A stretch of 64,000 nucleotides of DNA from Eukaryota sp. TZLM1-RC (Eukaryota > Protista > Metamonada: BaSk clade): NCBI GenBank assembly GCA_040285825.1, contig JAUPSS010000009.1:744001-808000 (forward strand), in the 5' to 3' direction. Below, one piece after another: positions 6,291 to 31,915 of the stretch. The first letter of the stretch is position 1; each line of letters opens with the position of its first letter. The position numbers and the translations under genes were made by a program. The notes under the pieces are model-generated. The model had not been told where the DNA came from. It was given only the letters and a program-made list of their open reading frames with translations, and made no database searches.

Positions 6291-6333
6291 GATTGACCAT
6301 CTTTCAATTAAATTGATTCTGTTGTTGTGGGGG

Positions 6334-9620: not shown

Positions 9621-10544
9621 ATTTGTCAAACAATAGACAGAAACAACAACAATTCTTCAGGCTGTTTAGTTGTAATTACAACCATGAGCGGAGCTGATAT
9701 TGAAGAATACTTTTGATAATGTATCAAACAAAAAATTACAAACCCAAATAATTGAAAATTAATCTAAAGTTGGACACGACATTGCCTTAACAACACGTCA
9801 CCTCAAGCCGTGACGTCACCAAAAAAAGCCGTTGTTGCCTTATTTTGATAGCTGCTCTAAGAAAATGTCGTGCTTTGTCAATTTACCAATTCACATGCGT
9901 AAATTTGATCAAAGATAGATAAAAAACTATGAAGAAACACAAAGTGAATCAACTATAGAAATGTAACAGAAATAAAAAAATATACTAATTTATATAGAAT
10001 ATTGATTGTTTAATGATTCCTGAAACAAGAACCGATCTATTTTGAGTTCTTCAAACTTAAATTAACATACAACTTAAGGCCAGTATGATGCATATCTCTG
10101 CAGTTTGAGGTGATCAATTCCAAAATGAATTGTCGAAAGGAGGACCTTTAGAATGCATTAAGATGTAGCTAAGCTTTGAATCACCATTTAGGAAGATGGA
10201 TTGTGATTGCTTTTCGTTTCATTGAAACAATTTTATCTCTATTGAAAGCCTCCGGATAATAAAAATTGGCGACAATTACTTCCAATACTTACATTAATTA
10301 AATTTTTTAATTACATTACTTTTTTGTTTAGAATATGAAACAACTGTTGTCATAGAAATTCAATCAGGTTTGTCTGATGTAGAGTCAGATTATGGTTGTA
10401 GTTTTTGTTCAATCTTCTTTACAAATACTTGATAATATATATTGTATTAATTTTTCATAATTGCAGGAACTTTGCACTATATGTGTTTCGTCACGTGGAA
10501 TTCACAATCCTTTTGATGTTTCTTGTCGTTGCTTGACTTTCAAT

Positions 10545-10685
10545 TGTTGTTGTTACTGATTAACTATCTTGCTAGACAGATGAGGAATTTACATGATGAC
10601 GTGGCACTTGTTCAAAAACAAGTATTTTTATTAATAAATCTCTTTTCTCTCTTTATTTCTTTGGTATTTCTGCCTAACGGCATCA
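10545..10685 (+). repeat. 5'-most LTR (141 bp)
   Basis: TG...CA with imperfect terminal IR; contains TGACGTGGCA and AATAAA; preceded by TSD CAAT. Confidence 0.9.
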
Positions 10686-10708
10686 ATAATTATTGGCCCT
10701 CATTGCAG

Positions 10709-11461
10709 ATGAAATCTACACACGTACTACATCCGTCCCTTGCTTCTATGGAAGTGGATGATGTTCTGTTGTTCCTACAACAGTGGAAGGTGTGCTCTTC
10801 TGTTACACCGAAAAAGGACCTTGTTCCAGCAAGGCTCCTCGTTGACCCCTTCTTGTTAGAATCATTGGTTCTCACAAGACCTAGGGTCGATTCATCCGAT
10901 GAGGTGTTTCTGGATCATTTAAGATCCTCCACCTCGTTTTCCTCGTACGAAGAATTCAACTTGGGGATGTCTGAGTTGAAGGTTGATGTCCGTAAGGGCG
11001 ACGTCCGTGAACGTATGTCCTGCTACCTGAGACGTTTTCTTCAGGCGAAAAGCAGGGCTTCCGGACTGAAGATGCCTGACTCAGCCTTCATGATCACGTT
11101 CGCCAAGGGTATTCTTTCATTAGGACTGCAGAAATCTCTGATTTCTCGAATTCGGGATGAGGTATTCCCCGATTTTCCTACATTGGTAAATACCGCAGAG
11201 GATGAACTACTTGATTGCACGCGAGTAGCTTCTTGGAACAGGTCTTCAAAGACTGTTTCTGAAAATACCGACTCTGTGCGTCAAGCTGGTATGAAGTCTC
11301 GTTCATCCCATAGGTCTCGCAATTTGACTGAAGGGACATGTTTCAAATGTCACCAGAAAGGTCATCTAGCTCGTGATTGCCCCTCAAAAGTTAAGCACGA
11401 AGTCAATCATTTACGCCACGTGCCTCAGTATCTCACAAATCCCCTTTCTTCATTATGCTAA
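10709..11461 (+). CDS. gag: Gag-like protein, copy 1 (intact, 250 aa)
   Basis: MKSTHV...; CX2CX4HX4C zinc knuckle. Confidence 0.8.
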   Translation: MKSTHVLHPSLASMEVDDVLLFLQQWKVCSSVTPKKDLVPARLLVDPFLLESLVLTRPRVDSSDEVFLDHLRSSTSFSSYEEFNLGMSELKVDVRKGDVRERMSCYLRRFLQAKSRASGLKMPDSAFMITFAKGILSLGLQKSLISRIRDEVFPDFPTLVNTAEDELLDCTRVASWNRSSKTVSENTDSVRQAGMKSRSSHRSRNLTEGTCFKCHQKGHLARDCPSKVKHEVNHLRHVPQYLTNPLSSLC

Positions 11462-11479
11462 ATGGTTCACGAAACTGTT

Positions 11480-11501
11480 GAAAGAAAATGGGAAGAAGTA
11501 G
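11480..11501 (+). other. Polypurine tract (present in every unit)
   Basis: GAAAGAAAATGGGAAGAAGTAG immediately before the TG of the next LTR. Confidence 0.8.
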
Positions 11502-11665
11502 TGTTGTTGTTATTGATCAACTATCTTGCTAGACAGATGAGGAATTTACATGATGACGTGGCACTTGTTCAAAAACAAGTATTTCTATTAATAAATCTCT
11601 TTTCTTTCTTTATTTCTTTGGTATTTCTGCCTAACGGCATCAATAATTATTGGCCCTCATTGCAG

Positions 11666-12418
11666 ATGAAATCTACACACGTACTACATCCTTCCCTTGC
11701 TTCTATGGAAGTGGATGATGTTCTGTTGTTCCTACAACAGTGGAAGGTGTACTTTTCTGTTACACCGAAAAAGGACCTTGTTCCAGCAAGGCTCCTCGTT
11801 GACCCCTTCTTGTTAGAATCATTGGTTCTCACAAGACCTAGGGTCGATTCATCCGATGAGGTGTTTCTGGATCATTTAAGATCCTCCACCTCGTTTTCCT
11901 CGTACGAAGAATTCAACTTGGGGATGTCTGAGTTGAAGGTTGATGTCCGTAAGGGCGACGTCCGTGAACGTATGTCCTGCTACCTGAGACGTTTTCTTCA
12001 GGCGAAAAGCAGGGCTTCCGGACTGAAACAGCCTGACTCAGCCTTCATGATCAGGTTCGCCAAGGGTATTCTTCCATTAGGACTGCAGAAATCTCTGATT
12101 TCTCGAATTCGGGATGAGGTATTCCCCGATTTTCCTACATTGGTAAATACCGCAGAGGATGAACTACTTGATTGCAAGCGAGTAGCTTCTTGGAACAGCT
12201 CTTCAAAGACTGTTTCTGAAAATACCGACTCTGTGCGTCAAGCTGGTATGAAGTCTCGTTCATCCCATAGGTCTCGCAATTTGACTGAAGGGACATGTTT
12301 CAAATGTCACCAGAAAGGTCATCTAGCTCGTGATTGCCCCTCAAAAGTTAAGCACGAAGTCAATCATTTACGCCACGTGCCTCAGTATCTCACAAATCCC
12401 CTTTCTTCATTATGCTAA
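11666..12418 (+). CDS. gag: Gag-like protein, copy 2 (intact)
   Basis: As copy 1. Confidence 0.8.
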   Translation: MKSTHVLHPSLASMEVDDVLLFLQQWKVYFSVTPKKDLVPARLLVDPFLLESLVLTRPRVDSSDEVFLDHLRSSTSFSSYEEFNLGMSELKVDVRKGDVRERMSCYLRRFLQAKSRASGLKQPDSAFMIRFAKGILPLGLQKSLISRIRDEVFPDFPTLVNTAEDELLDCKRVASWNSSSKTVSENTDSVRQAGMKSRSSHRSRNLTEGTCFKCHQKGHLARDCPSKVKHEVNHLRHVPQYLTNPLSSLC

Positions 12419-12623: not shown

Positions 12624-13376
12624 ATGAAATCTACACACGTACTACATCCTTCCCTTGCTTCTATGGAAGTGGATGATGTTCTGTTGTTCCTACAACAGTG
12701 GAAGGTGTACTTTTCTGTTACACCGAAAAAGGACCTTGTTCCAGCAAGGCTCCTCGTTGACCCCTTCTTGTTAGAATCATTGGTTCTCACAAGACCTGGG
12801 GTCGATTCATCAGATGAGGTGTTTTTGGATCATTTAAGATCCTCCACCTCGTTTTCCTCGTACGAAGAATTCAACTTGGGGATGTCTGAGTTGAAGGTTG
12901 ATGTCCGTAAGGGCGACGTCCGTGAACGTATGTCCTGCTACCTGAGACGTTTTCTTCAGGCGAAAAGCAGGGCTTCCGGACTGAAACAGCCTGACTCAGC
13001 CTTCATGATCAGGTTCGCCAAGGGTATTCTTCCATTAGGACTGCAGAAATCTCTGATTTCTCGAATTCGGGATGAGGTATTCCCCGATTTTCCTACATTG
13101 GTAAATACCGCAGAGGATGAACTACTTGATTGCAAGCGAGTAGCTTCTTGGAACAGCTCTTCAAAGACTGTTTCTGAAAATACCGACTCTGTGCGTCAAG
13201 CTGGTATGAAGTCTCGTTCATCCCATAGGTCTCGCAATTTGACTGAAGGGACATGTTTCAAATGTCACCAGAAAGGTCATCTAGCTCGTGATTGCCCCTC
13301 AAAAGTTAAGCACGAAGTCAATCATTTACGCCACGTGCCTCAGTATCTCACAAATCCCCTTTCTTCATTATGCTAA
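12624..13376 (+). CDS. gag: Gag-like protein, copy 3 (intact)
   Basis: As copy 1. Confidence 0.8.
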   Translation: MKSTHVLHPSLASMEVDDVLLFLQQWKVYFSVTPKKDLVPARLLVDPFLLESLVLTRPGVDSSDEVFLDHLRSSTSFSSYEEFNLGMSELKVDVRKGDVRERMSCYLRRFLQAKSRASGLKQPDSAFMIRFAKGILPLGLQKSLISRIRDEVFPDFPTLVNTAEDELLDCKRVASWNSSSKTVSENTDSVRQAGMKSRSSHRSRNLTEGTCFKCHQKGHLARDCPSKVKHEVNHLRHVPQYLTNPLSSLC

Positions 13377-13580: not shown

Positions 13581-14333
13581 ATGAAATCTACACACGTACT
13601 ACATCCGTCCCTTGCTTCTATGGAAGTGGATGATGTTCTGTTGTTCCTACAACAGTGGAAGGTGTACTCTTCTGTTACACCGAAAAAGGACCTTGTTCCA
13701 GCAAGGCTCCTCGTTGACCCCTTCTTGTTAGAATCATTGGTTCTCACAAGACCTAGGGTCGATTCATCAGATGAGGTGTTTTTGGATCATTTAAGATCCT
13801 CCACCTCGTTTTCCTCGTACGAAGAATTCAACTTGGGGATGTCTGAGTTGAAGGTTGATGTCCGTAAGGGCGACGTCCGTGAACGTATGTCCTGCTACCT
13901 GAGACGTTTTCTTCAGGCGAAAAGCAGGGCTTCCGGACTGAAACAGCCTGACTCAGCCTTCATGATCAGGTTCGCCAAGGGTATTCTTCCATTAGGACTG
14001 CAGAAATCTCTGATTTCTCGAATTCGGGATGAGGTATTCCCCGATTTTCCTACATTGGTAAATACCGCAGAGGATGAACTACTTGATTGCAAGCGAGTAG
14101 CTTCTTGGAACAGCTCTTCAAAGACTGTTTCTGAAAATACCGACTCTGTGCGTCAAGCTGGTATGAAGTCTCGTTCATCCCATAGGTCTCGCAATTTGAC
14201 TGAAGGGACATGTTTCAAATGTCACCAGAAAGGTCATCTAGCTCGTGATTGCCCCTCAAAAGTTAAGCACGAAGTCAATCATTTACGCCACGTGCCTCAG
14301 TATCTCACAAATCCCCTTTCTTCATTATGCTAA
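13581..14333 (+). CDS. gag: Gag-like protein, copy 4 (intact)
   Basis: As copy 1. Confidence 0.8.
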   Translation: MKSTHVLHPSLASMEVDDVLLFLQQWKVYSSVTPKKDLVPARLLVDPFLLESLVLTRPRVDSSDEVFLDHLRSSTSFSSYEEFNLGMSELKVDVRKGDVRERMSCYLRRFLQAKSRASGLKQPDSAFMIRFAKGILPLGLQKSLISRIRDEVFPDFPTLVNTAEDELLDCKRVASWNSSSKTVSENTDSVRQAGMKSRSSHRSRNLTEGTCFKCHQKGHLARDCPSKVKHEVNHLRHVPQYLTNPLSSLC

Positions 14334-14537
14334 ATGGTTCACGAAACTGTTGAAAGAAAATGGGAAGAAGTAGTGTTGTTGTTACTGATTAACTATCTTG
14401 CTAGACAGATGAGGAATTTAAATGATGACGTGGCACTTGTTCAAAAACAAGTATTTCTATTAATAAATCTCTTTTCTTTCTTTATTTCTTTGGTATTTCT
14501 GCCTAACGGCATCAATAATTATTGGCCCTCATTGCAG

Positions 14538-15290
14538 ATGAAATCTACACACGTACTACATCCGTCCCTTGCTTCTATGGAAGTGGATGATGTTCTGTTG
14601 TTCCTACAACAGTGGAAGGTGTACTCTTCTGTTACACCGAAAAAGGACCTTGTTCCAGCAAGGCTCCTCGTTGACCCCTTCTTGTTAGAATCATTGGTTC
14701 TCACAAGACCTAGGGTCGATTCATCAGATGAGGTGTTTTTGGATCATTTAAGATCCTCCACCTCGTTTTCCTCGTACGAAGAATTCAACTTGGGGATGTC
14801 TGAGTTGAAGGTTGATGTCCGTAAGGGCGACGTCCGTGAACGTATGTCCTGCTACCTGAGACGTTTTCTTCAGGCGAAAAGCAGGGCTTCCGGACTGAAA
14901 CAGCCTGACTCAGCCTTCATGATCAGGTTCGCCAAGGGTATTCTTCCATTAGGACTGCAGAAATCTCTGATTTCTCGAATTCGGGATGAGGTATTCCCCG
15001 ATTTTCCTACATTGGTAAATACCGCAGAGGATGAACTACTTGATTGCACGCGAGTAGCTTCTTGGAACAGCTCTTCAAAGACTGTTTCTGAAAATACCGA
15101 CTCTGTGCGTCAAGCTGGTATGAAGTCTCGTTCATCCCATAGGTCTCGCAATTTGACTGAAGGGACATGTTTCAAATGTCACCAGAAAGGTCATCTAGCT
15201 CGTGATTGCCCCTCAAAAGTTAAGCACGAAGTCAATCATTTACGCCACGTGCCTCAGTATCTCACAAATCCCCTTTCTTCATTATGCTAA
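14538..15290 (+). CDS. gag: Gag-like protein, copy 5 (intact)
   Basis: As copy 1. Confidence 0.8.
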   Translation: MKSTHVLHPSLASMEVDDVLLFLQQWKVYSSVTPKKDLVPARLLVDPFLLESLVLTRPRVDSSDEVFLDHLRSSTSFSSYEEFNLGMSELKVDVRKGDVRERMSCYLRRFLQAKSRASGLKQPDSAFMIRFAKGILPLGLQKSLISRIRDEVFPDFPTLVNTAEDELLDCTRVASWNSSSKTVSENTDSVRQAGMKSRSSHRSRNLTEGTCFKCHQKGHLARDCPSKVKHEVNHLRHVPQYLTNPLSSLC

Positions 15291-15495: not shown

Positions 15496-16247
15496 ATGAA
15501 ATCTACACACGTACTACATCCGTCCCTTGCTTCTATGGAAGTGGATGATGTTCTGTTGTTCCTACAACAGTGGAAGGTGTACTCTTCTGTTACACCGAAA
15601 AAGGACCTTGTTCCAGCAAGGCTCCTCGTTGACCCCTTCTTGTTAGAATCATTGGTTCTCACAAGACCTAGGGTCGATTCATCCGATGAGGTGTTTCTGG
15701 ATCATTTAAGATCCTCCACCTCGTTTTCCTCGTACGAAGAATTCAACTTGGGGATGTCTGAGTTGAAGGTTGATGTCCGTAAGGGCGACGTCCGTGAACG
15801 TATGTCCTGCTACCTGAGACGTTTTCTTCAGGCGAAAAGCAGGGCTTCCGGACTGAAGATGCCTGACTCAGCCTTCATGATCACGTTCGCCAAGGGTATT
15901 CTTTCATTAGGACTGCAGAAATCTCTGATTTCTCGAATTCGGGATGAGGTATTCCCGATTTTCCTACATTGGTAAATACCGCAGAGGATGAACTACTTGA
16001 TTGCACGCGAGTAGCTTCTTGGAACAGGTCTTCAAAGACTGTTTCTGAAAATACCGACTCTGTGCGTCAAGCTGGTATGAAGTCTCGTTCATCCCATAGG
16101 TCTCGCAATTTGACTGAAGGGACATGTTTCAAATGTCACCAGAAAGGTCATCTAGCTCGTGATTGCCCCTCAAAAGTTAAGCACGAAGTCAATCATTTAC
16201 GCCACGTGCCTCAGTATCTCACAAATCCCCTTTCTTCATTATGCTAA
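15496..16247 (+). pseudogene. gag: Gag copy 6, frameshifted as assembled
   Basis: 1-nt loss in a C-run near 15955. Confidence 0.65.
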
Positions 16248-16451
16248 ATGGTTCACGAAACTGTTGAAAGAAAATGGGAAGAAGTAGTGTTGTTGTTACT
16301 GATTAACTATCTTGCTAGACAGATGAGGAATTTAAATGATGACGTGGCACTTGTTCAAAAACAAGTATTTCTATTAATAAATCTCTTTTCTTTCTTTATT
16401 TCTTTGGTATTTCAGCCTAACGGCATCAATAATTATTGGCCCTCATTGCAG

Positions 16452-17204
16452 ATGAAATCTACACACGTACTACATCCGTCCCTTGCTTCTATGGAAGTGG
16501 ATGATGTTCTGTTGTTCCTACAACAGTGGAAGGTGTACTCTTCTGTTACACCGAAAAAGGACCTTGTTCCAGCAAGGCTCCTCGTTGACCCCTTCTTGTT
16601 AGAATCATTGGTTCTCACAAGACCTAGGGTCGATTCATCCGATGAGGTGTTTCTGGATCATTTAAGATCCTCCACCTCGTTTTCCTCGTACGAAGAATTC
16701 AACTTGGGGATGTCTGAGTTGAAGGTTGATGTCCGTAAGGGCGACGTCCGTGAACGTATGTCCTGCTACCTGAGACGTTTTCTTCAGGCGAAAAGCAGGG
16801 CTTCCGGACTGAAACAGCCTGACTCAGCCTTCATGATCACGTTCGCCAAGGGTATTCTTTCATTAGGACTGCAGAAATCTCTGATTTCTCGAATTCGGGA
16901 TGAGGTATTCCCCGATTTTCCTACATTGGTAAATACCGCAGAGGATGAACTACTTGATTGCACGCGAGTAGCTTCTTGGAACAGGTCTTCAAAGACTGTT
17001 TCTGAAAATACCGACTCTGTGCGTCAAGCTGGTATGAAGTCTCGTTCATCCCATAGGTCTCGCAATTTGACTGAAGGGACATGTTTCAAATGTCACCAGA
17101 AAGGTCATCTAGCTCGTGATTGCCCCTCAAAAGTTAAGCACGAAGTCAATCATTTACGCCACGTGCCTCAGTATCTCACAAATCCCCTTTCTTCATTATG
17201 CTAA
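16452..17204 (+). CDS. gag: Gag-like protein, copy 7 (intact)
   Basis: As copy 1. Confidence 0.8.
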   Translation: MKSTHVLHPSLASMEVDDVLLFLQQWKVYSSVTPKKDLVPARLLVDPFLLESLVLTRPRVDSSDEVFLDHLRSSTSFSSYEEFNLGMSELKVDVRKGDVRERMSCYLRRFLQAKSRASGLKQPDSAFMITFAKGILSLGLQKSLISRIRDEVFPDFPTLVNTAEDELLDCTRVASWNRSSKTVSENTDSVRQAGMKSRSSHRSRNLTEGTCFKCHQKGHLARDCPSKVKHEVNHLRHVPQYLTNPLSSLC

Positions 17205-17408
17205 ATGGTTCACGAAACTGTTGAAAGAAAATGGGAAGAAGTAGTGTTGTTGTTACTGATTAACTATTTTGCTAGACAGATGAGGAATTTAAATGATGAC
17301 GTGGCACTTGTTCAAAAACAAGTATTTCTATTAATAAATCTCTTTTCTTTCTTTATTTCTTTGGTATTTCTGCCTAACGGCATCAATAATTATTGGCCCT
17401 CATTGCAG

Positions 17409-18160
17409 ATGAAATCTACACACGTAATACATCCGTCCCTTGCTTCTATGGAAGTGGATGATGTTCTGTTGTTCCTACAACAGTGGAAGGTGTACTCTTC
17501 TGTTACACCGAAAAAGGACCTTGTTCCAGCAAGGCTCCTCGTTGACCCCTTCTTGTTAGAATCATTGGTTCTCACAAGACCTGGGGTCGATTCATCCGAT
17601 GAGGTGTTTCTGGATCATTTAAGATCCTCCACCTCGTTTTCCTCGTACGAAGAATTCAACTTGGGGATGTCTGAGTTGAAGGTTGATGTCCGTAAGGGCG
17701 ACGTCCGTGAACGTATGTCCTGCTACCTGAGACGTTTTCTTCAGGCGAAAAGCAGGGCTTCCGGACTGAAGATGCCTGACTCAGCCTTCATGATCACGTT
17801 CGCCAAGGGTATTCTTTCATTAGGACTGCAGAAATCTCTGATTTCTCGAATTCGGGATGAGGTATTCCCCGATTTTCCTACATTGGTAAATACCGCAGAG
17901 GATGAACTACTTGATTGCACGCGAGTAGCTTCTTGGAACAGGTCTTCAAAGACTGTTTCTGAAAATACCGACTCTGTGCGTCAAGCTGGTATGAAGTCTC
18001 GTTCATCCCATAGGTCTCGCAATTTGACTGAAGGGACATGTTTCAAATGTCACCAGAAAGGTCATCTAGCTCGTGATTGCCCTCAAAAGTTAAGCACGAA
18101 GTCAATCATTTACGCCACGTGCCTCAGTATCTCACAAATCCCCTTTCTTCATTATGCTAA
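17409..18160 (+). pseudogene. gag: Gag copy 8, frameshift after the knuckle as assembled
   Basis: 1-nt loss in a C-run near 18080. Confidence 0.65.
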
Positions 18161-18364
18161 ATGGTTCACGAAACTGTTGAAAGAAAATGGGAAGAAGTAG
18201 TGTTGTTGTTACTGATCAACTATCTTGCTAGACAGATGAGTAATTTACATGATGACGTGGCACTTGTTCAAAAACAAGTATTTCTATTAATAAATCTCTT
18301 TTCTTTCTTTATTTCTTTGGTATTTCTGCCTAACGGCATCAATAATTATTGGCCCTCATTGCAG

Positions 18365-19117
18365 ATGAAATCTACACACGTACTACATCCTTCCCTTGCT
18401 TCTATGGAAGTGGATGATGTTCTGTTGTTCCTACAACAGTGGAAGGTGTACTTTTCTGTTACACCGAAAAAGGACCTTGTTCCAGCAAGGCTCCTCGTTG
18501 ACCCCTTCTTGTTAGAATCATTGGTTCTCACAAGACCTGGGGTCGATTCATCAGATGAGGTGTTTTTGGATCATTTAAGATCCTCCACCTCGTTTTCCTC
18601 GTACGAAGAATTCAACTTGGGGATGTCTGAGTTGAAGGTTGATGTCCGTAAGGGCGACGTCCGTGAACGTATGTCCTGCTACCTGAGACGTTTTCTTCAG
18701 GCGAAAAGCAGGGCTTCCGGACTGAAACAGCCTGACTCAGCCTTCATGATCAGGTTCGCCAAGGGTATTCTTCCATTAGGACTGCAGAAATCTCTGATTT
18801 CTCGAATTCGGGATGAGGTATTCCCCGATTTTTCTACATTGGTAAATACCGCAGAGGATGAACTACTTGATTGCAAGCGAGTAGCTTCTTGGAACAGCTC
18901 TTCAAAGACTGTTTCTGAAAATACCGACTCTGTGCGTCAAGCTGGTATGAAGTCTCGTTCATCCCATAGGTCTCGCAATTTGACTGAAGGGACATGTTTC
19001 AAATGTCACCAGAAAGGTCATCTAGCTCGTGATTGCCCCTCAAAAGTTAAGCACGAAGTCAATCATTTACGCCACGTGCCTCAGTATCTCACAAATCCCC
19101 TTTCTTCATTATGCTAA
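18365..19117 (+). CDS. gag: Gag-like protein, copy 9 (intact)
   Basis: As copy 1. Confidence 0.8.
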   Translation: MKSTHVLHPSLASMEVDDVLLFLQQWKVYFSVTPKKDLVPARLLVDPFLLESLVLTRPGVDSSDEVFLDHLRSSTSFSSYEEFNLGMSELKVDVRKGDVRERMSCYLRRFLQAKSRASGLKQPDSAFMIRFAKGILPLGLQKSLISRIRDEVFPDFSTLVNTAEDELLDCKRVASWNSSSKTVSENTDSVRQAGMKSRSSHRSRNLTEGTCFKCHQKGHLARDCPSKVKHEVNHLRHVPQYLTNPLSSLC

Positions 19118-19321
19118 ATGGTTCACGAAACTGTTGAAAGAAAATGGGAAGAAGTAGTGTTGTTGTTACTGATTAACTATCTTGCTAGACAGATGAGGAA
19201 TTTAAATGATGACGTGGCACTTGTTCAAAAACAAGTATTTCTATTAATAAATCTCTTTTCTTTCTTTATTTCTTTGGTATTTCTGCCTAACGGCATCAAT
19301 AATTATTTGCCCTCATTGCAG

Positions 19322-20074
19322 ATGAAATCTACACACGTACTACATCCGTCCCTTGCTTCTATGGAAGTGGATGATGTTCTGTTGTTCCTACAACAGTGGA
19401 AGGTGTACTCTTCTGTTACACCGAAAAAGGACCTTGTTCCAGCAAGGCTCCTCGTTGACCCCTTCTTGTTAGAATCATTGGTTCTCACAAGACCTAGGGT
19501 CGATTCATCCGATGAGGTGTTTCTGGATCATTTAAGATCCTCCACCTCGTTTTCCTCGTACGAAGAATTCAACTTGGGGATGTCTGAGTTGAAGGTTGAT
19601 GTCCGTAAGGGCGACGTCCGTGAACGTATGTCCTGCTACCTGAGACGTTTTCTTCAGGCGAAAAGCAGGGCTTCCGGACTGAAACAGCCTGACTCAGCCT
19701 TCATGATCACGTTCGCCAAGGGTATTCTTCCATTAGTACTGCAGAAATCTCTGATTTCTCGAATTCGGGATGAGGTATTCCCCGATTTTCCTACATTGGT
19801 AAATACCGCAGAGGATGAACTACTTGATTGCACGCGAGTAGCTTCTTGGAACAGGTCTTCAAAGACTGTTTCTGAAAATACCGACTCTGTGCGTCAAGCT
19901 GGTATGAAGTCTCGTTCATCCCATAGGTCTCGCAATTTGACTGAAGGGACATGTTTCAAATGTCACCAGAAAGGTCATCTAGCTCGTGATTGCCCCTCAA
20001 AAGTTAAGCACGAAGTCAATCATTTACGCCACGTGCCTCAGTATCTCACAAATCCCCTTTCTTCATTATGCTAA
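19322..20074 (+). CDS. gag: Gag-like protein, copy 10 (intact)
   Basis: As copy 1. Confidence 0.8.
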   Translation: MKSTHVLHPSLASMEVDDVLLFLQQWKVYSSVTPKKDLVPARLLVDPFLLESLVLTRPRVDSSDEVFLDHLRSSTSFSSYEEFNLGMSELKVDVRKGDVRERMSCYLRRFLQAKSRASGLKQPDSAFMITFAKGILPLVLQKSLISRIRDEVFPDFPTLVNTAEDELLDCTRVASWNRSSKTVSENTDSVRQAGMKSRSSHRSRNLTEGTCFKCHQKGHLARDCPSKVKHEVNHLRHVPQYLTNPLSSLC

Positions 20075-22199: not shown

Positions 22200-22953
22200 A
22201 TGAAATCTACACACGTACTACATCCGTCCCTTGCTTCTATGGAAGTGGATGATGTTCTGTTGTTCCTACAACAGTGGAAGGTGTACTCTTCTGTTACACC
22301 GAAAAAGGACCTTGTTCCAGCAAGGCTCCTCGTTGACCCCTTCTTGTTAGAATCATTGGTTCTCACAAGACCTGGGGTCGATTCATCCGATGAGGTGTTT
22401 CTGGATCATTTAAGATCCTCCACCTCGTTTTCCTCGTACGAAGAATTCAACTTGGGGATGTCTGAGTTGAAGGTTGATGTCCGTAAGGGCGACGTCCGTG
22501 AACGTATGTCCTGCTACCTGAGACGTTTTTCTTCAGGCGAAAAGCAGGGCTTCCGGACTGAAGATGCCTGACTCAGCCTTCATGATCACGTTCGCCAAGG
22601 GTATTCTTTCATTAGGACTGCAGAAATCTCTGATTTCTCGAATTCGGGATGAGGTATTCCCCGATTTTCCTACATTGGTAAATACCGCAGAGGATGAACT
22701 ACTTGATTGCACGCGAGTAGCTTCTTGGAACAGCTCTTCAAAGACTGTTTCTGAAAATACCGACTCTGTGCGTCAAGCTGGTATGAAGTCTCGTTCATCC
22801 CATAGGTCTCGCAATTTGACTGAAGGGACATGTTTCAAATGTCACCAGAAAGGTCATCTAGCTCGTGATTGCCCCTCAAAAGTTAAGCACGAAGTCAATC
22901 ATTTACGCCACGTGCCTCAGTATCTCACAAATCCCCTTTCTTCATTATGCTAA
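22200..22953 (+). pseudogene. gag: Gag copy 13, frameshifted as assembled
   Basis: +1 in a T-run near 22528. Confidence 0.65.
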
Positions 22954-23159
22954 ATGGTTCACGAAACTGTTGAAAGAAAATGGGAAGAAGTAGTGTTGTT
23001 GTTACTGATTAACTATCTTGCTAGACAGATGAGGAATTTAAATGATGACGTGGCACTTGTTCAAAAACAAGTATTTCTATTAATAAATCTCTTTTCTTTC
23101 TTTTATTTCTTTTGGTATTTCTGCCTAACGGCATCAATAATTATTGGCCCTCATTGCAG

Positions 23160-23916
23160 ATGAAATCTACACACGTAATACATCCGTCCCTTGCTTCTAT
23201 GGAAGTGGATGATGTTCTGTTGTTCCTACAACAGTGGAAGGTGTACTCTTCTGTTACACCGAAAAAGGACCTTGTTCCAGCAAGGCTCCTCGTTGACCCC
23301 TTCTTGTTAGAATCATTGGTTCTCACAAGACCTGGGGGTCGATTCATCCGATGAGGTGTTTCTGGATCATTTAAGATCCTCCACCTCGTTTTCCTCGTAC
23401 GAAGAATTCAACTTGGGGATGTCTGAGTTGAAGGTTGATGTCCGTAAGGGCGACGTCCGTGAACGTATGTCCTGCTACCTGAGACGTTTTTCTTCAGGCG
23501 AAAAGCAGGGCTTCCGGACTGAAACAGCCTGACTCAGCCTTCATGATCAGGTTCGCCAAGGGTATTCTTCCATTAGGGACTGCAGAAATCTCTGATTTCT
23601 CGAATTCGGGATGAGGTATTCCCCGATTTTCCTACATTGGTAAATACCGCAGAGGATGAACTACTTGATTGCACGCGAGTAGCTTCTTGGAACAGCTCTT
23701 CAAAGACTGTTTCTGAAAATACCGACTCTGTGCGTCAAGCTGGTATGAAGTCTCGTTCATCCCATAGGTCTCGCAATTTGACTGAAGGGACATGTTTCAA
23801 AATGTCACCAGAAAGGTCATCTAGCTCGTGATTGCCCCTCAAAAGTTAAGCACGAAGTCAATCATTTACGCCACGTGCCTCAGTATCTCACAAATCCCCT
23901 TTCTTCATTATGCTAA
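23160..23916 (+). pseudogene. gag: Gag copy 14, several frameshifts as assembled
   Basis: Four homopolymer insertions. Confidence 0.65.
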
Positions 23917-24120
23917 ATGGTTCACGAAACTGTTGAAAGAAAATGGGAAGAAGTAGTGTTGTTGTTACTGATTAACTATCTTGCTAGACAGATGAGGAAT
24001 TTAAATGATGACGTGGCACTTGTTCAAAAACAAGTATTTCTATTAATAAATCTCTTTTCTTTCTTTATTTCTTTGGTATTTCTGCCTAACGGCATCAATA
24101 ATTATTGGCCCTCATTGCAG

Positions 24121-24874
24121 ATGAAATCTACACACGTACTACATCCGTCCCTTGCTTCTATGGAAGTGGATGATGTTCTGTTGTTCCTACAACAGTGGAA
24201 GGTGTACTCTTCTGTTACACCGAAAAAGGACCTTGTTCCAGCAAGGCTCCTCGTTGACCCCTTCTTGTTAGAATCATTGGTTCTCACAAGACCTGGGGTC
24301 GATTCATCCGATGAGGTGTTTCTGGATCATTTAAGATCCTCCACCTCGTTTTCCTCGTACGAAGAATTCAACTTGGGGATGTCTGAGTTGAAGGTTGATG
24401 TCCGTAAGGGCGACGTCCGTGAACGTATGTCCTGCTACCTGAGACGTTTTCTTCAGGCGAAAAGCAGGGCTTCCGGACTGAAACAGCCTGACTCAGCCTT
24501 CATGATCAGGTTCGCCAAGGGTATTCTTCCATTAGGACTGCAGAAATCTCTGATTTCTCGAATTCGGGATGAGGTATTCCCCGATTTTCCTACATTGGTA
24601 AATACCGCAGAGGATGAACTACTTGATTGCACGCGAGTAGCTTCTTGGAACAGCTCTTCAAAGACTGTTTCTGAAAATACCGACTCTGTGCGTCAAGCTG
24701 GTATGAAGTCTCGTTCATCCCATAGGTCTCGCAATTTGACTGAAGGGACATGTTTCAAAATGTCACCAGAAAGGTCATCTAGCTCGTGATTGCCCCTCAA
24801 AAGTTAAGCACGAAGTCAATCATTTACGCCACGTGCCTCAGTATCTCACAAATCCCCTTTCTTCATTATGCTAA
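24121..24874 (+). pseudogene. gag: Gag copy 15, frameshifted as assembled
   Basis: +1 in an A-run near 24758. Confidence 0.65.
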
Positions 24875-25079
24875 ATGGTTCACGAAACTGTTGAAAGAAA
24901 ATGGGAAGAAGTAGTGTTGTTGTTACTGATTAACTATCTTGCTAGACAGATGAGGAATTTAAATGATGACGTGGCACTTGTTCAAAAACAAGTATTTCTA
25001 TTAATAAATCTCTTTTTCTTTCTTTATTTCTTTGGTATTTCTGCCTAACGGCATCAATAATTATTGGCCCTCATTGCAG

Positions 25080-25832
25080 ATGAAATCTACACACGTACTA
25101 CATCCGTCCCTTGCTTCTATGGAAGTGGATGATGTTCTGTTGTTCCTACAACAGTGGAAGGTGTACTCTTCTGTTACACCGAAAAAGGACCTTGTTCCAG
25201 CAAGGCTCCTCGTTGACCCCTTCTTGTTAGAATCATTGGTTCTCACAAGACCTGGGGTCGATTCATCCGATGAGGTGTTTCTGGATCATTTAAGATCCTC
25301 CACCTCGTTTTCCTCGTACGAAGAATTCAACTTGGGGATGTCTGAGTTGAAGGTTGATGTTCGTAAGGGGGACGTCCGTGAACGTATGTCCTGCTACCTG
25401 AGACGTTTTCTTCAGGCGAAAAGCAGGGCTTCCGGACTGAAGATGCCTGACTCAGCCTTCATGATCACGTTCGCCAAGGGTATTCTTTCATTAGGACTGC
25501 AGAAATCTCTGATGTCTCGAATTCGGGATGAGGTATTCCCCGATTTTCCTACATTGGTAAATACCGCAGAGGATGAACTACTTGATTGCACGCGAGTAGC
25601 TTCTTGGAACAGCTCTTCAAAGACTGTTTCTGAAAATACCGACTCTGTGCGTCAAGCTGGTATGAAGTCTCGTTCATCCCATAGGTCTCGCAATTTGACT
25701 GAAGGGACATGTTTCAAATGTCACCAGAAAGGTCATCTAGCTCGTGATTGCCCCTCAAAAGTTAAGCACGAAGTCAATCATTTACGCCACGTGCCTCAGT
25801 ATCTCACAAATCCCCTTTCTTCATTATGCTAA
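25080..25832 (+). CDS. gag: Gag-like protein, copy 16 (intact)
   Basis: As copy 1. Confidence 0.8.
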   Translation: MKSTHVLHPSLASMEVDDVLLFLQQWKVYSSVTPKKDLVPARLLVDPFLLESLVLTRPGVDSSDEVFLDHLRSSTSFSSYEEFNLGMSELKVDVRKGDVRERMSCYLRRFLQAKSRASGLKMPDSAFMITFAKGILSLGLQKSLMSRIRDEVFPDFPTLVNTAEDELLDCTRVASWNSSSKTVSENTDSVRQAGMKSRSSHRSRNLTEGTCFKCHQKGHLARDCPSKVKHEVNHLRHVPQYLTNPLSSLC

Positions 25833-26037
25833 ATGGTTCACGAAACTGTTGAAAGAAAATGGGAAGAAGTAGTGTTGTTGTTACTGATTAACTATCTTGC
25901 TAGACAGATGAGGAATTTAAATGATGACGTGGCACTTGTTCAAAAACAAGTATTTCTATTAATAAATCTCTTTTCTTTCTTTATTTCTTTTGGTATTTCT
26001 GCCTAACGGCATCAATAATTATTGGCCCTCATTGCAG

Positions 26038-26791
26038 ATGAAATCTACACACGTACTACATCCGTCCCTTGCTTCTATGGAAGTGGATGATGTTCTGTTG
26101 TTCCTACAACAGTGGAAGGTGTACTCTTCTGTTACACCGAAAAAGGACCTTGTTCCAGCAAGGCTCCTCGTTGACCCCCTTCTTGTTAGAATCATTGGTT
26201 CTCACAAGACCTGGGGTCGATTCATCCGATGAGGTGTTTCTGGATCATTTAAGATCCTCCACCTCGTTTTCCTCGTACGAAGAATTCAACTTGGGGATGT
26301 CTGAGTTGAAGGTTGATGTCCGTAAGGGCGACGTCCGTGAACGTATGTCCTGCTACCTGAGACGTTTTCTTCAGGCGAAAAGCAGGGCTTCCGGACTGAA
26401 GATGCCTGACTCAGCCTTCATGATCACGTTCGCCAAGGGTATTCTTTCATTAGGACTGCAGAAATCTCTGATGTCTCGAATTCGGGATGAGGTATTCCCC
26501 GATTTTCCTACATTGGTAAATACCGCAGAGGATGAACTACTTGATTGCACGCGAGTAGCTTCTTGGAACAGCTCTTCAAAGACTGTTTCTGAAAATACCG
26601 ACTCTGTGCGTCAAGCTGGTATGAAGTCTCGTTCATCCCATAGGTCTCGCAATTTGACTGAAGGGACATGTTTCAAATGTCACCAGAAAGGTCATCTAGC
26701 TCGTGATTGCCCCTCAAAAGTTAAGCACGAAGTCAATCATTTACGCCACGTGCCTCAGTATCTCACAAATCCCCTTTCTTCATTATGCTAA
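26038..26791 (+). pseudogene. gag: Gag copy 17, frameshifted as assembled
   Basis: +1 in a C-run near 26177. Confidence 0.65.
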
Positions 26792-26995
26792 ATGGTTCAC
26801 GAAACTGTTGAAAGAAAATGGGAAGAAGTAGTGTTGTTGTTACTGATCAACTATCTTGCTAGACAGATGAGGAATTTACATGATGACGTGGCACTTGTTC
26901 AAAAACAAGTATTTCTATTAATAAATCTCTTTTCTTTCTTTATTTCTTTGGTATTTCTGCCTAACGGCATCAATAATTATTGGCCCTCATTGCAG

Positions 26996-27750
26996 ATGAA
27001 ATCTACACACGTACTACATCCTTCCCTTGCTTCTATGGAAGTGGATGATGTTCTGTTGTTCCTACAACAGTGGAAGGTGTACTTTTCTGTTACACCGAAA
27101 AAGGACCTTGTTCCAGCAAGGCTCCTCGTTGACCCCTTCTTGTTAGAATCATTGGTTCTCACAAGACCTGGGGTCGATTCATCAGATGAGGTGTTTTTGG
27201 ATCATTTAAGATCCTCCACCTCGTTTTCCTCGTACGAAGAATTCAACTTGGGGATGTCTGAGTTGAAGGTTGATGTCCGTAAGGGCGACGTCCGTGAACG
27301 TATGTCCTGCTACCTGAGACGTTTTCTTCAGGCGAAAAGCAGGGCTTCCGGACTGAAACAGCCTGACTCAGCCTTCATGATCAGGTTCGCCAAGGGTATT
27401 CTTCCATTAGGACTGCAGAAATCTCTGATTTCTCGAATTCGGGATGAGGTATTCCCCCGATTTTTCCTACATTGGTAAATACCGCAGAGGATGAACTACT
27501 TGATTGCACGCGAGTAGCTTCTTGGAACAGCTCTTCAAAGACTGTTTCTGAAAATACCGACTCTGTGCGTCAAGCTGGTATGAAGTCTCGTTCATCCCAT
27601 AGGTCTCGCAATTTGACTGAAGGGACATGTTTCAAATGTCACCAGAAAGGTCATCTAGCTCGTGATTGCCCCTCAAAAGTTAAGCACGAAGTCAATCATT
27701 TACGCCACGTGCCTCAGTATCTCACAAATCCCCTTTCTTCATTATGCTAA
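26996..27750 (+). pseudogene. gag: Gag copy 18, frameshifted as assembled
   Basis: +2 in C/T runs near 27455-27465. Confidence 0.65.
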
Positions 27751-27954
27751 ATGGTTCACGAAACTGTTGAAAGAAAATGGGAAGAAGTAGTGTTGTTGTT
27801 ACTGATTAACTATTTTGCTAGACAGATGAGGAATTTAAATGATGACGTGGCACTTGTTCAAAAACAAGTATTTCTATTAATAAATCTCTTTTCTTTCTTT
27901 ATTTCTTTGGTATTTCTGCCTAACGGCATCAATAATTATTGGCCCTCATTGCAG

Positions 27955-28707
27955 ATGAAATCTACACACGTAATACATCCGTCCCTTGCTTCTATGGAAG
28001 TGGATGATGTTCTGTTGTTCCTACAACAGTGGAAGGTGTACTCTTCTGTTACACCGAAAAAGGACCTTGTTCCAGCAAGGCTCCTCGTTGACCCCTTCTT
28101 GTTAGAATCATTGGTTCTCACAAGACCTGGGGTCGATTCATCCGATGAGGTGTTTCTGGATCATTTAAGATCCTCCACCTCGTTTTCCTCGTACGAAGAA
28201 TTCAACTTGGGGATGTCTGAGTTGAAGGTTGATGTCCGTAAGGGCGACGTCCGTGAACGTATGTCCTGCTACCTGAGACGTTTTCTTCAGGCGAAAAGCA
28301 GGGCTTCCGGACCGAAACAGCCTGACTCAGCCTTCATGATCAGGTTCGCCAAGGGTATTCTTCCATTAGGACTGCAGAAATCTCTGATTTCTCGAATTCG
28401 GGATGAGGTATTCCCCGATTTTCCTACATTGGTAAATACCGCAGAGGATGAACTACTTGATTGCACGCGAGTAGCTTCTTGGAACAGCTCTTCAAAGACT
28501 GTTTCTGAAAATACCGACTCTGTGCGTCAAGCTGGTATGAAGTCTCGTTCATCCCATAGGTCTCGCAATTTGACTGAAGGGACATGTTTCAAATGTCACC
28601 AGAAAGGTCATCTAGCTCGTGATTGCCCCTCAAAAGTTAAGCACGAAGTCAATCATTTACGCCACGTGCCTCAGTATCTCACAAATCCCCTTTCTTCATT
28701 ATGCTAA
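27955..28707 (+). CDS. gag: Gag-like protein, copy 19 (intact)
   Basis: As copy 1. Confidence 0.8.
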   Translation: MKSTHVIHPSLASMEVDDVLLFLQQWKVYSSVTPKKDLVPARLLVDPFLLESLVLTRPGVDSSDEVFLDHLRSSTSFSSYEEFNLGMSELKVDVRKGDVRERMSCYLRRFLQAKSRASGPKQPDSAFMIRFAKGILPLGLQKSLISRIRDEVFPDFPTLVNTAEDELLDCTRVASWNSSSKTVSENTDSVRQAGMKSRSSHRSRNLTEGTCFKCHQKGHLARDCPSKVKHEVNHLRHVPQYLTNPLSSLC

Positions 28708-28911: not shown

Positions 28912-29664
28912 ATGAAATCTACACACGTACTACATCCGTCCCTTGCTTCTATGGAAGTGGATGATGTTCTGTTGTTCCTACAACAGTGGAAGGTGTACTC
29001 TTCTGTTACACCGAAAAAGGACCTTGTTCCAGCAAGGCTCCTCGTTGACCCCTTCTTGTTAGAATCATTGGTTCTCACAAGACCTGGGGTCGATTCATCC
29101 GATGAGGTGTTTCTGGATCATTTAAGATCCTCCACCTCGTTTTCCTCGTACGAAGAATTCAACTTGGGGATGTCTGAGTTGAAGGTTGATGTCCGTAAGG
29201 GCGACGTCCGTGAACGTATGTCCTGCTACCTGAGACGTTTTCTTCAGGCGAAAAGCAGGGCTTCCGGACTGAAGATGCCTGACTCAGCCTTCATGATCAC
29301 GTTCGCCAAGGGTATTCTTTCATTAGGACTGCAGAAATCTCTGATGTCTCGAATTCGGGATGAGGTATTCCCCGATTTTCCTACATTGGTAAATACCGCA
29401 GAGGATGAACAACTTGATTGCACGCGAGTAGCTTCTTGGAACAGCTCTTCAAAGACTGTTTCTGAAAATACCGACTCTGTGCGTCAAGCTGGTATGAAGT
29501 CTCGTTCATCCCATAGGTCTCGCAATTTGACTGAAGGGACATGTTTCAAATGTCACCAGAAAGGTCATCTAGCTCGTGATTGCCCCTCAAAAGTTAAGCA
29601 CGAAGTCAATCATTTACGCCACGTGCCTCAGTATCTCACAAATCCCCTTTCTTCATTATGCTAA
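28912..29664 (+). CDS. gag: Gag-like protein, copy 20 (intact)
   Basis: As copy 1. Confidence 0.8.
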   Translation: MKSTHVLHPSLASMEVDDVLLFLQQWKVYSSVTPKKDLVPARLLVDPFLLESLVLTRPGVDSSDEVFLDHLRSSTSFSSYEEFNLGMSELKVDVRKGDVRERMSCYLRRFLQAKSRASGLKMPDSAFMITFAKGILSLGLQKSLMSRIRDEVFPDFPTLVNTAEDEQLDCTRVASWNSSSKTVSENTDSVRQAGMKSRSSHRSRNLTEGTCFKCHQKGHLARDCPSKVKHEVNHLRHVPQYLTNPLSSLC

Positions 29665-29868
29665 ATGGTTCACGAAACTGTTGAAAGAAAATGGGAAGAA
29701 GTAGTGTTGTTGTTACTGATTAACTATTTTGCTAGACAGATGAGGAATTTAAATGATGACGTGGCACTTGTTCAAAAACAAGTATTTCTATTAATAAATC
29801 TCTTTTCTTTCTTTATTTCTTTGGTATTTCTGCCTAACGGCATCAATAATTATTGGCCCTCATTGCAG

Positions 29869-30621
29869 ATGAAATCTACACACGTAATACATCCGTCCCT
29901 TGCTTCTATGGAAGTGGATGATGTTCTGTTGTTCCTACAACAGTGGAAGGTGTACTCTTCTGTTACACCGAAAAAGGACCTTGTTCCAGCAAGGCTCCTC
30001 GTTGACCCCTTCTTGTTAGAATCATTGGTTCTCACAAGACCTGGGGTCGATTCATCCGATGAGGTGTTTCTGGATCATTTAAGATCCTCTACCTCGTTTT
30101 CCTCGTACGAAGAATTCAACTTGGGGATGTCTGAGTTGAAGGTTGATGTCCGTAAGGGCGACGTCCGTGAACGTATGTCCTGCTACCTGAGACGTTTTCT
30201 TCAGGCGAAAAGCAGGGCTTCCGGACTGAAACAGCCTGACTCAGCCTTCATGATCAGGTTCGCCAAGGGTATTTTTCCATTAGGACTGCAGAAATCTCTG
30301 ATTTCTCGAATTCGGGATGAGGTATTCCCCGATTTTCCTACATTGGTAAATACCGCAGAGGATGAACTACTTGATTGCACGCGAGTAGCTTCTTGGAACA
30401 GGTCTTCAAAGACTGTTTCTGAAAATACCGACTCTGTGCGTCAAGCTGGTATGAAGTCTCGTTCATCCCATTGGTCTCGCAATTTGACTGAAGGGACATG
30501 TTTTAAATGTCACCAGAAAGGTCATCTAGCTCGTGATTGCCCCTCAAAAGTTAAGCACGAAGTCAATCATTTACGCCACGTGCCTCAGTATCTCACAAAT
30601 CCCCTTTCTTCATTATGCTAA
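29869..30621 (+). CDS. gag: Gag-like protein, copy 21 (intact)
   Basis: As copy 1. Confidence 0.8.
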   Translation: MKSTHVIHPSLASMEVDDVLLFLQQWKVYSSVTPKKDLVPARLLVDPFLLESLVLTRPGVDSSDEVFLDHLRSSTSFSSYEEFNLGMSELKVDVRKGDVRERMSCYLRRFLQAKSRASGLKQPDSAFMIRFAKGIFPLGLQKSLISRIRDEVFPDFPTLVNTAEDELLDCTRVASWNRSSKTVSENTDSVRQAGMKSRSSHWSRNLTEGTCFKCHQKGHLARDCPSKVKHEVNHLRHVPQYLTNPLSSLC

Positions 30622-30661
30622 ATGGTTCACGAAACTGTTGAAAGAAAATGGGAAGAAGTAG

Positions 30662-30802
30662 TGTTGTTGTTACTGATTAACTATCTTGCTAGACAGATGA
30701 GGAATTTACATGATGACGTGGCACTTGTTCAAAACCAAGTATTTCTATTAATAAATCTCTTTTCTCTCTTTACTTCTTTGGTATTTCTGCCTAACGGCAT
30801 CA
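30662..30802 (+). repeat. 3'-most LTR (141 bp)
   Basis: TG...CA, followed by TSD CAAT and unique sequence. Confidence 0.9.
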
Positions 30803-31915
30803 CAATAATGTTATTGCTGATTTGAACGCCGACTTCTGAAAAAAGGAGGGCTTTAAAACATGCAAATTTTTAATTTTTCGACACAATGTTTTCCGTGCCC
30901 CAATAATTTGTTTAATGATTTAAGTTGTAGGTAAACCTCTTTTAATTACTCAACTTTTTATTACACTGTTAGGGCATTACAATAGAGCATCTATGCGTCT
31001 CACAACAGGTGCTACATTGAACTTTCCATTTTGTTTTCGCGGCCTACATAGAAACTTCACTATTGTATGAACATAAACATCATTGTGCGATTCAAAATGG
31101 AGATTAGTTGACAATCGAACTCGGTACCTACAAATGCAAAATATCGAAATCATTCACCGTTTTCAGCATCAATATTTTAAAATATCACATCAACATCCAA
31201 CTTCCTTTCAGATTCAGTATGTTCATAGAAAATTGTACAGGAAACCGACTTGTTATTGTTGGCTCCTGGCCAAATTGAGTTATAAGAAATGTATTTACAG
31301 GCATCACGTGATGCCACGTCATCATGTCTTTATTTAGATTGAAGACATATCGTTGGTCCTTAAGTAAAATCTATACGGCGATTGTTCTATGAAAAATAAA
31401 GAATTTCGCAAATTATAGTTCACACAGAAGTGATTCAACACTTTTCATGTTCAGTGTGCCCACCTAATGTGTTTCCTGTTATAGACCATTTCCCCTTTCA
31501 AAACAATCCTTATTGATCAGCTCTAGAATGGTTTGGTAAAGGTTGAATTTCTTACTTTTTCACAACTATATTTAACAATTCACATCTCAGTAATAAATCA
31601 TCTAATGAATAATAAATGATTATTTGAATCATATTATGCTGTCAAAACACTTTTGTCGACAGGTCTCTCTTTATAGCCGAAATTGTTTAATGTCGAAGTT
31701 GAATTTCGTCAGAGTGGGAATTTAGTTACATGTAAATCCAATTGTTTTTGAAGTTGTTAACTTATGCACTATGAGGATCTCTCGTTTTAAGTATTTGGCG
31801 TAACATATACTATCAATTGTTTCTTCAAGTGAGCGTGCTTTGACAACGCGGTAAAATAAAATGAAAATCACTGTTCTTTATATGAAAATATGATATATCC
31901 CAAATTAGAATTAAA

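Follow-up and report, generated by a model that had tools for sequence, protein, structure and literature searches.

A 64,000-nucleotide stretch of the TZLM1-RC assembly (GCA_040285825.1, contig JAUPSS010000009.1, positions 744,001 to 808,000 of the forward strand), referred to here as the window, contains a tandem array of 21 gag-bearing units joined by shared long terminal repeats (LTRs). TZLM1-RC is Skoliomonas litria, a free-living anaerobic soda-lake metamonad (PMC11603281). We consider it likely that the locus represents one insertion of a non-autonomous, gag-only LTR element of Ty3/gypsy descent, which was expanded in place by homology-driven recombination and is a passive by-product of that process. 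A single insertion that grew in place is indicated by the monophyly of all the units and by the single CAAT target-site duplication that encloses them, and a by-product rather than a host gene cluster is suggested because the copies inside the array drift neutrally.

Structure of the gag array

The array was delimited by direct reading of the + strand, on which all of its features lie. It is enclosed by the target-site duplication CAAT, found at 10541-10544 on the 5' side and again at 30803-30806 on the 3' side. The first LTR (10545-10685) is 141 bp long, runs from TGTTG to CATCA and contains the motif TGATGACGTGGCA and an AATAAA block; it differs at 3 of 141 positions from the last, 22nd LTR (30662-30802). 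Twenty-one tandem units of 956-963 bp each (10545-30661) follow one another in the order LTR, 23-nt leader with the palindrome CAATAATTATTG, 753-nt gag, purine-rich tract and next LTR. The palindrome, followed by GCC, lies across the LTR end at the place expected for the primer-binding site (10684-10698 in the first unit), and the purine-rich tract GAAAGAAAATGGGAAGAAGTAG (11480-11501) abuts the next LTR; both are present in all units. A free element of this design would measure 1,098 bp, consisting of a 141-bp LTR, the region encoding the 250-amino-acid (aa) Gag and a second LTR.

Motif and repeat searches gave the same picture. A 22-nt LTR motif matched 22 times on the + strand (10564-30681, at a spacing of 956-963 bp) and not once on the - strand, and a repeat search recovered 21 in-register copies spaced 957-961 bp apart, with identities mostly of 96-100%. 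Tandem Repeats Finder (TRF) returned a blank output, which is uninformative for 957-bp units because its longest period is 500. The locus is therefore built as a shared-LTR tandem, with 21 internal regions and 22 LTRs in one orientation inside a single outer CAAT duplication. The CAAT pair is not a chance match, because 13 of the 14 family loci that were read, all of them fetched through the family proteins, show a perfect 4-bp duplication at identical LTR ends.

The gag gene of unit 1 (10709-11461) is intact and encodes 250 aa with capsid and CCHC nucleocapsid regions. The other intact copies are located at 11666-12418, 12624-13376, 13581-14333, 14538-15290, 16452-17204, 18365-19117, 19322-20074, 25080-25832, 27955-28707, 28912-29664 and 29869-30621. 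All nine frameshifted copies (units 6, 8, 11-15, 17 and 18) fall within 15496-27790, a stretch that also holds four intact ones (units 7, 9, 10 and 16), and none of the 21 copies carries a nonsense substitution as assembled. No pol gene (protease, reverse transcriptase [RT], RNase H or integrase) was found within the array units in the list of open reading frames (ORFs) or among the Pfam domains, and there is no place for one since gag takes up 753 nt of the 957-bp unit. The array unit is thus a derivative, and not a full member, of the Ty3/gypsy (Metaviridae) LTR retrotransposons. The unit was also searched for RNA polymerase III or other RNA genes of the kind carried by Cassandra elements, and no transfer RNA (tRNA) or Rfam family matched. 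An earlier reading made from the sequence only had described the locus as LTR-(gag-purine tract-LTR)x21 with shared 141-bp LTRs, CAAT at the outer ends only, no pol and 12 fully intact 250-aa Gag copies, and direct reading proved it correct on every point, with 12 intact and nine frameshifted copies counted.

The whole 957-bp unit also forms a single open frame (319 codons, with TAA followed directly by ATG; 11462-12418). This frame is closed in the family's older copies, in the sister family and in the related element of GEM-RC1, where stops lie 12-31 codons upstream. Since it was not kept in these elements, the open frame is probably a product of chance and recent common descent. In an array of TZLM3-RCL (L016, 10001-10915), the gag ORF continues through the purine tract and the LTR and ends 15 nt before the next ATG, and the TZLM3-RCL gene models likewise extend through the LTR, which keeps the whole-unit frame noteworthy.

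The array ORF is predicted to encode a Ty3/gypsy-type Gag

Relatives of the array Gag are annotated as "hypothetical proteins" in Eukaryota sp. TZLM1-RC, GEM-RC1 and TZLM3-RCL, and Pfam detected only a zf-CCHC knuckle in the protein. Using phmmer, we found that residues 9-229 align to the N terminus of the GEM-RC1 polyprotein P0085 (E 4.8e-23, 31% identity), which downstream of its gag part contains protease, RT, RNase H and integrase. Two metagenomic polyproteins with chromodomains, which are of the chromovirus type, were also matched.

An AlphaFold model of Gag, based on 16 homologues, had a mean predicted local distance difference test (pLDDT) score of 81 and was helical over residues 16-179, followed by the knuckle. 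Foldseek gave no significant E-value for this model. VIA-align, the Z-scores of which are only moderately specific for helical proteins, matched it to the capsid (CA) of copia (Z 11.2 over 155 residues), the C-terminal domain of PEG10 (Z 10.0), dArc2 (Z 8.7), the CA of murine leukemia virus (MLV; Z 8.6) and Ty3 (Z 7.6), and almost all of the best-ranked structural matches were retroelement capsids. On the strength of the HMMER homology to gag-pol N termini and of the VIA-align fold matches, the predicted product is a genuine capsid-nucleocapsid Gag of Ty3/gypsy descent.

The gag-only family is dispersed and recently mobile

Five solo LTR-gag-LTR copies (L002, L003, L004, L013 and L014) were 93.7-98.5% identical to the array unit. 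They have the same LTR ends as the array and are flanked by TAAA, CATC, ATAG, ATTA and one degraded pair, CTTA/CGTA; two of them, L013 and L014, differ by only 0.21%. A sister family has a unit of 963 bp and a Gag that is 64% identical to the array Gag, and one identical 251-aa protein of this family occurs at seven loci, each with its own perfect duplication. The gag-only family is thus dispersed and has recently been mobile as a 1.1-kb LTR-gag-LTR unit.

Relatives of gag-only design are present in all three sequenced Skoliomonas genomes. GEM-RC1 contains an element of the same architecture, with an LTR of ~131 bp, a 256-aa Gag, the duplication GTTT and LTRs that are 99% identical to each other, and TZLM3-RCL contains more distant gag-only families. 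Several blocks are kept across these families despite the divergence of the LTR bodies, namely a purine tract ending in GTAG, a TGTT(G/A) start of the LTR and a GGCA(T/A)CA end followed by ATAATTATTGGCCC. Even a TZLM3-RCL family with a Gag of only 30% identity has the junction of GAAGAAGTAG with TGTTG.

The dN/dS ratio of gag between the array family and the GEM-RC1 gag-only element was 0.07-0.10 (~0.08), with dN at ~0.15 and dS at ~1.8, which is near saturation and makes the ratio approximate. These values indicate that the gag-only design is old and that its Gag is functionally constrained. Gag would be kept functional at the level of the family because the element needs it to package its own RNA.

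The array units descend from a single founder

A maximum-likelihood tree of the 21 units and the five solo copies placed all units in one clade (support 100/98). Four substitutions, at unit positions 95, 407, 421 and 554, are fixed in the array and not found in the solo copies, and the minor alleles inside the array are mostly derived. A few polymorphisms are common to the array and the solo copies; the monophyly of the units nevertheless rules out several source copies for them. The claim of a single insertion amplified in place, made in the sequence-only reading, is thus supported both by the lone outer 4-bp duplication and by the grouping of the 21 units against the five solos. Supported subclades were also resolved, for example units 2, 3, 9, 11 and 18 and units 1, 6, 8, 13, 16, 17 and 20, the members of which are scattered along the array. 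This scatter suggests that units were exchanged unequally or converted many times over, or that the assembler mis-phased some of them.

Shared-LTR tandems recur in the family and in the genus. Three loci of the sister family carry them, each with one outer duplication: two units in L001 (CTTG), two in L012 (ATGG) and three in L007 (GTTT). In TZLM3-RCL, L016, as read inside its outer ends, consists of six gag-only units of 930 bp and seven LTRs. Tandems made up four of the 14 loci read. The 21-unit array therefore appears to be no singular locus but the longest member of a series.

A simple course of events would account for these observations. The element would have integrated at CAAT and made the 4-bp duplication typical of the family. 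Unequal exchange between its 5' and 3' LTRs could then have produced a dimer, later exchange in the 957-bp register would have expanded it, and repeated exchange or conversion would have scattered the variant types along the array. As a possible second route, complementary DNA (cDNA) of the element itself could have annealed to the resident copy, a process shown for the fission yeast element Tf1. RT and integrase would be borrowed from another element (trans-mobilization), and an element that borrows integrase might often use the annealing route. Given the monophyly of the units, any annealing cDNA must have stemmed from the array's own lineage. Both unequal exchange and cDNA annealing fit the data, which do not separate them.

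Variation within the array and reliability of the assembly

The 21 units differed in 36 substitution columns and 14 indel columns, with a mean of 8.8 differences per pair (0.92%). Within gag, 19 variable columns were nonsynonymous and eight were synonymous, giving a ratio of nonsynonymous to synonymous polymorphism (pN/pS) of 0.73 (binomial p = 0.29, with only 27 variable columns), and the lack of nonsense changes was unremarkable given that 1.15 were expected. The variation of gag inside the array is indistinguishable from neutral. Constraint acts on the transposing lineage and is undetectable on the array copies.

This bears on the possibility that the array is a Gag-dosage locus, kept because the host or the family profits from some dozen expressed Gag genes, in which case excess or mismatched Gag could poison the particles of an autonomous element in the manner of Ty1 copy-number control or Fv1. 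Such a role would fit the 12 intact ORFs and the absence of nonsense substitutions, the presence in every unit of its own LTR with conserved TGATGACGTGGCA and AATAAA blocks, and the strong between-species constraint on Gag, and it would gain if several of the frameshifts were sequencing errors. However, the variation within the array is statistically neutral, nine of the 21 copies are frameshifted as assembled, the element itself needs Gag, which explains the between-species constraint, and other sites carry arrays of different size, as a stochastic process predicts. The gene also lies inside a fully mobile element, the sisters of which transposed recently. We regard a dosage role as unlikely, and a dominant-negative effect of Gag dosage is unsupported, as no test result points to it. 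Domestication, which the sequence-only reading had also raised, is contradicted by the same observations. An Fv1-like gene would be a fixed host locus that has lost its mobility signals, whereas here gag is part of a complete mobile element, whose LTRs, purine tract and duplications are intact, sister copies have moved recently (0.2% between two solos and an identical protein at seven loci), and selection on the array copies is not apparent (pN/pS 0.73, p = 0.29). We infer that the array as such has no host function.

The reliability of the assembly affects both the number of units and the state of their genes. The TZLM1-RC assembly is based on Nanopore R9.4 data, with Illumina reads used for its correction (10.1101/2023.05.03.539051). 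Of the 14 indel columns, 13 fall within short homopolymer runs, and the indels are concentrated in units 6, 8, 11-15, 17 and 18. This pattern is what uncorrected Nanopore errors would leave where short reads lack unique placement, the alternative being genuine slippage. Some of the "broken" gag copies may therefore be intact, because their indels sit in homopolymers of a Nanopore assembly.

Taken further, these observations raise the question of an assembly artefact, in which the true number of units would be far lower or different and the interleaved variants and indels would be consensus noise of long reads. The R9.4 origin of the assembly would favor it, as would the clustering of the homopolymer indels in the middle of the array, where short reads are not uniquely placeable. 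On the other hand, the substitution variants form consistent haplotype groups that extend over several units and yield supported subclades, and smaller arrays of like build are present in three assemblies. Independent short-read contigs also speak against it. In Logan contigs from small DNA runs, contigs of the unit (0-3 mismatches) had a word depth of 31-40 compared with 2.1 for the sole flank contig, an excess of ~15-19 fold that is rough and includes young dispersed copies. This contrast argues weakly against an artefact of one or two units and leaves the number 21 unfixed. Overall, an artefact of this kind seems very unlikely.

Another DNA run of the same study, X3, labeled as organism B, contained low-depth contigs 99.5% identical to the array unit (window 14061-14475). 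Because the nearest family in the assembly of the other species is only 74% identical in protein, these contigs suggest barcode bleed or cross-contamination between libraries, and not shared elements.

Pol-bearing elements in Skoliomonas

Several pol-bearing elements of the same lineage were read. In GEM-RC1, L015 is a 4.3-kb gag-pol element with 110-bp LTRs in which the TGATGACGTGGCA motif is present and the palindrome CAGTAATTACTG follows the LTR. TZLM1-RC itself contains L017, an older gag-pol element with a different LTR, its own two LTRs being 92% identical, and a gag-pol gene beside the solo copy in L003, the 3' LTR of which is also different. A pol-only LTR element of 2.9 kb, L018, was found in TZLM1-RC (JAUPSS010000004.1, 3882-6743). 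It has identical 92-bp LTRs that run from TGTAATCG to GCTACA, the duplication AGGT and the palindrome AGTAACGTTACT next to the LTR, and 27 nt separate the LTR from an ORF that encodes RT, RNase H and integrase without gag and without protease. L018 sits inside a 1,150-bp non-coding tandem repeat close to a contig end. In GEM-RC1, the commonest pol gene of the lineage (a cluster of 19; L019, 60-3000) lies in an LTR element of ~6.1 kb, the first 3 kb of which matched neither Gag nor protease and includes an internal tandem repeat.

The autonomous partner with the same LTR that the sequence-only reading had called for did not turn up among the pol loci read (L003, L015, L017, L018 and L019), and the Gag portion of the GEM-RC1 polyprotein, used as a query, retrieved nothing but itself.

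The pol-only element invites the idea of a split retroelement, in which the gag-only and pol-only LTR elements are the halves of one system and the copy number of gag supplies an excess of Gag. The retrotransposon genome of Skoliomonas would then be divided between Gag on gag-only elements (~100 predicted genes) and RT-RNase H-integrase on pol-only ones, and the array would be the Gag supply locus of a bipartite element. L018 does reside in the same genome as the gag-only elements and is built like them: its ends are TGT...ACA, its duplication is 4 bp long, its purine tract ends in GTAG and a palindrome comes directly after the LTR. The pol genes of this lineage (a cluster of four) are far outnumbered by gag-only genes (clusters of 42 and 58 at 90% identity), although these counts are gene predictions. 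Yet the LTR sequences and the palindromes differ between the gag-only and the pol-only elements, gag-pol elements (L003 and L017) are found in the TZLM1-RC genome as well, and no sign of co-mobilization emerged. We consider a split system, and with it a role of the array as a supply locus, to be quite unlikely. If it were true, the excess of Gag over Pol, which retroviruses make by frameshifting, would be set by gene copy number.

The interpretation of the array as one gag-only insertion that grew passively by recombination has several points to contend with. Twelve intact ORFs out of 21 at ~1% divergence, with no nonsense change, would also fit weak selection. Both the count of units and the indels in homopolymers are as given by the assembly, and the near-saturated dS of ~1.8 between species makes the evidence of constraint approximate. 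Since the dispersed loci were reached through intact proteins, both the intactness of the solo copies and the fraction of tandems (four of 14) are biased samples. Finally, none of the loci read held a pol-bearing element that shares the LTR ends and the palindrome; the gag-pol elements L015, L017 and L003 and the pol-only L018 have other LTRs, and their Gag is at most ~31% identical.

A palindrome at the primer site and a shared LTR motif

The palindrome CAATAATTATTG followed by GCC matched the array 21 times, where chance would give 0.14 matches, and it was present in all 14 family loci examined. The sequence after the LTR did not match the 3' ends of the two tRNA-Asn genes of the window, the only tRNAs compared. 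In each of four different LTR families, a 12-nt palindrome starts at, or inside, the CA that ends the LTR. The palindromes differ and yet stay self-complementary: CAATAATTATTG in the array (window 10684-10695), CAGTAATTACTG in L015 (2974-2985), AGTAACGTTACT in L018 (3973-3984) and CAATGATCATTG in L019 (47-58). This amounts to covariation-like evidence for what may be a functional dimerization or priming element that replaces the tRNA primer site.

The 13-nt motif TGATGACGTGGCA, which is bZIP/CRE-like, was found in the array LTR (window 11550-11562) and in L005, L015 and L018, being reverse-complemented in L018. It is shared by gag-only, gag-pol and pol-only elements, the LTRs of which have otherwise diverged, and is probably a common promoter element.

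Genomic neighborhood

The array is flanked by ordinary genes, which encode a sulfatase-domain protein, SNF2, pyruvate formate-lyase (PFL) and RAD23. On one side, an RT ORF (6307-4283 on the - strand, that is, 4283-6307) overlaps head-to-head with the sulfatase-domain ORF (6289-8790, + strand), and on the other, a fragment of PFL (38747-39715, - strand), an enzyme ordinary for an anaerobe, likewise places the array among genes. A truncated LTR remnant of the family (46834-46928, - strand), which was detected by blastn and corresponds to LTR positions 50-141 at 89% identity, is a separate old insertion. The junction of GGCAACA with ATAATTATTG at 61737-61751 (- strand) belongs to a second, decayed LTR family and has no recognizable gag or pol adjoining it.

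This setting is relevant to two further roles considered in the sequence-only reading, a source of small RNAs against the family and a nascent satellite or centromere repeat. The array is indeed tandem, near-identical and derived from a transposable element, and tandems of transposable elements can seed satellites (PMC5932611; PMC11042837). However, it spans only 20 kb, lies on a single strand without inverted copies, is placed amid ordinary genes and has kept its coding capacity. Either role appears very unlikely to us.

Significance

Gag-only LTR elements and shared-LTR arrays, which are known mainly from plants and yeasts, are now found in a deep-branching free-living metamonad, and the genome paper for TZLM1-RC has no mention of retrotransposons (10.1101/2023.05.03.539051). 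An array of this kind is new for metamonads, and what stands out is the genus-wide persistence of the gag-only design. The natural series of 1, 2, 3, 6 and 21 units is useful for studying the origin of tandem retroelement arrays and satellites, and with it one can ask whether a lack of integrase predisposes elements to grow by recombination, independently of integrase. For the genome resources, dozens of "hypothetical protein" gene models in the Skoliomonas genomes are transposon Gag, and ~20 kb of the assembly is flagged as a region where copy number and frameshifts warrant care at the level of the reads. The more surprising leads lie beside the array, in the primer-site palindrome and the pol-only element.

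Comparison with known systems

The closest counterparts in design are the plant terminal-repeat retrotransposons with a GAG domain, named TR-GAG (PMC13570524). Like them, the Skoliomonas element is a short LTR element with a purine tract, target-site duplications, a single gag ORF and many dispersed copies. LTRs, purine tract and a lone gag ORF without pol were found in both the array and the solo copies, and the family transposes as a gag-only unit. Unlike the plant elements, it resides in a metamonad, measures only 1.1 kb with 141-bp LTRs, makes 4-bp instead of 5-bp duplications and has a 12-nt palindrome at the expected tRNA primer site; in addition, the gag-only state occurs in three species, and Gag is strongly constrained.

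In its arrangement, the locus resembles the arrays of TRIM (terminal-repeat retrotransposons in miniature) and of Cassandra, which are LTR-internal-LTR chains that share LTRs and often have one outer duplication. Shared-LTR arrays of Cassandra are documented (PMC7215508), and tandems of non-autonomous LTR elements in sugar beet contain up to 21 LTRs, mostly keep their duplications and were attributed to recombination (PMC13570524). The present array has 22 LTRs, compared with the 21 in sugar beet. In contrast to TRIM, which has no ORF, and to Cassandra, which carries 5S genes, every unit here holds a complete gag, so that the element is not a TRIM by definition.

Tf1 is self-primed. The array element shares with Tf1 and Tf2 the Ty3/gypsy lineage and the joining of tandem copies by one LTR, and no tRNA-type primer site was evident in it against the two tRNA-Asn genes of the window. 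In fission yeast, Tf1 cDNA forms single-LTR tandems by integrase-independent, Rad52-dependent annealing, and such tandems are present in wild isolates (PMC11042837). This likeness offers a mechanism, in that an element short of integrase would favor tandem growth. The Tf elements differ from the array element in being autonomous, and their tandems are mostly dimers.

As a Gag protein encoded without Pol, the array product is comparable to p22 of Ty1 copy-number control (PMC7055915) and to Fv1, and like them it could interfere with capsid assembly. However, p22 is a truncated product of Ty1 itself and Fv1 is a fixed single-copy host gene, whereas the array encodes full Gag in a mobile element and gave no evidence of restriction. 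Compared with all of these systems, the array is a TR-GAG-like non-autonomous element in a shared-LTR array of the TRIM/Cassandra type, and not a new class of system.

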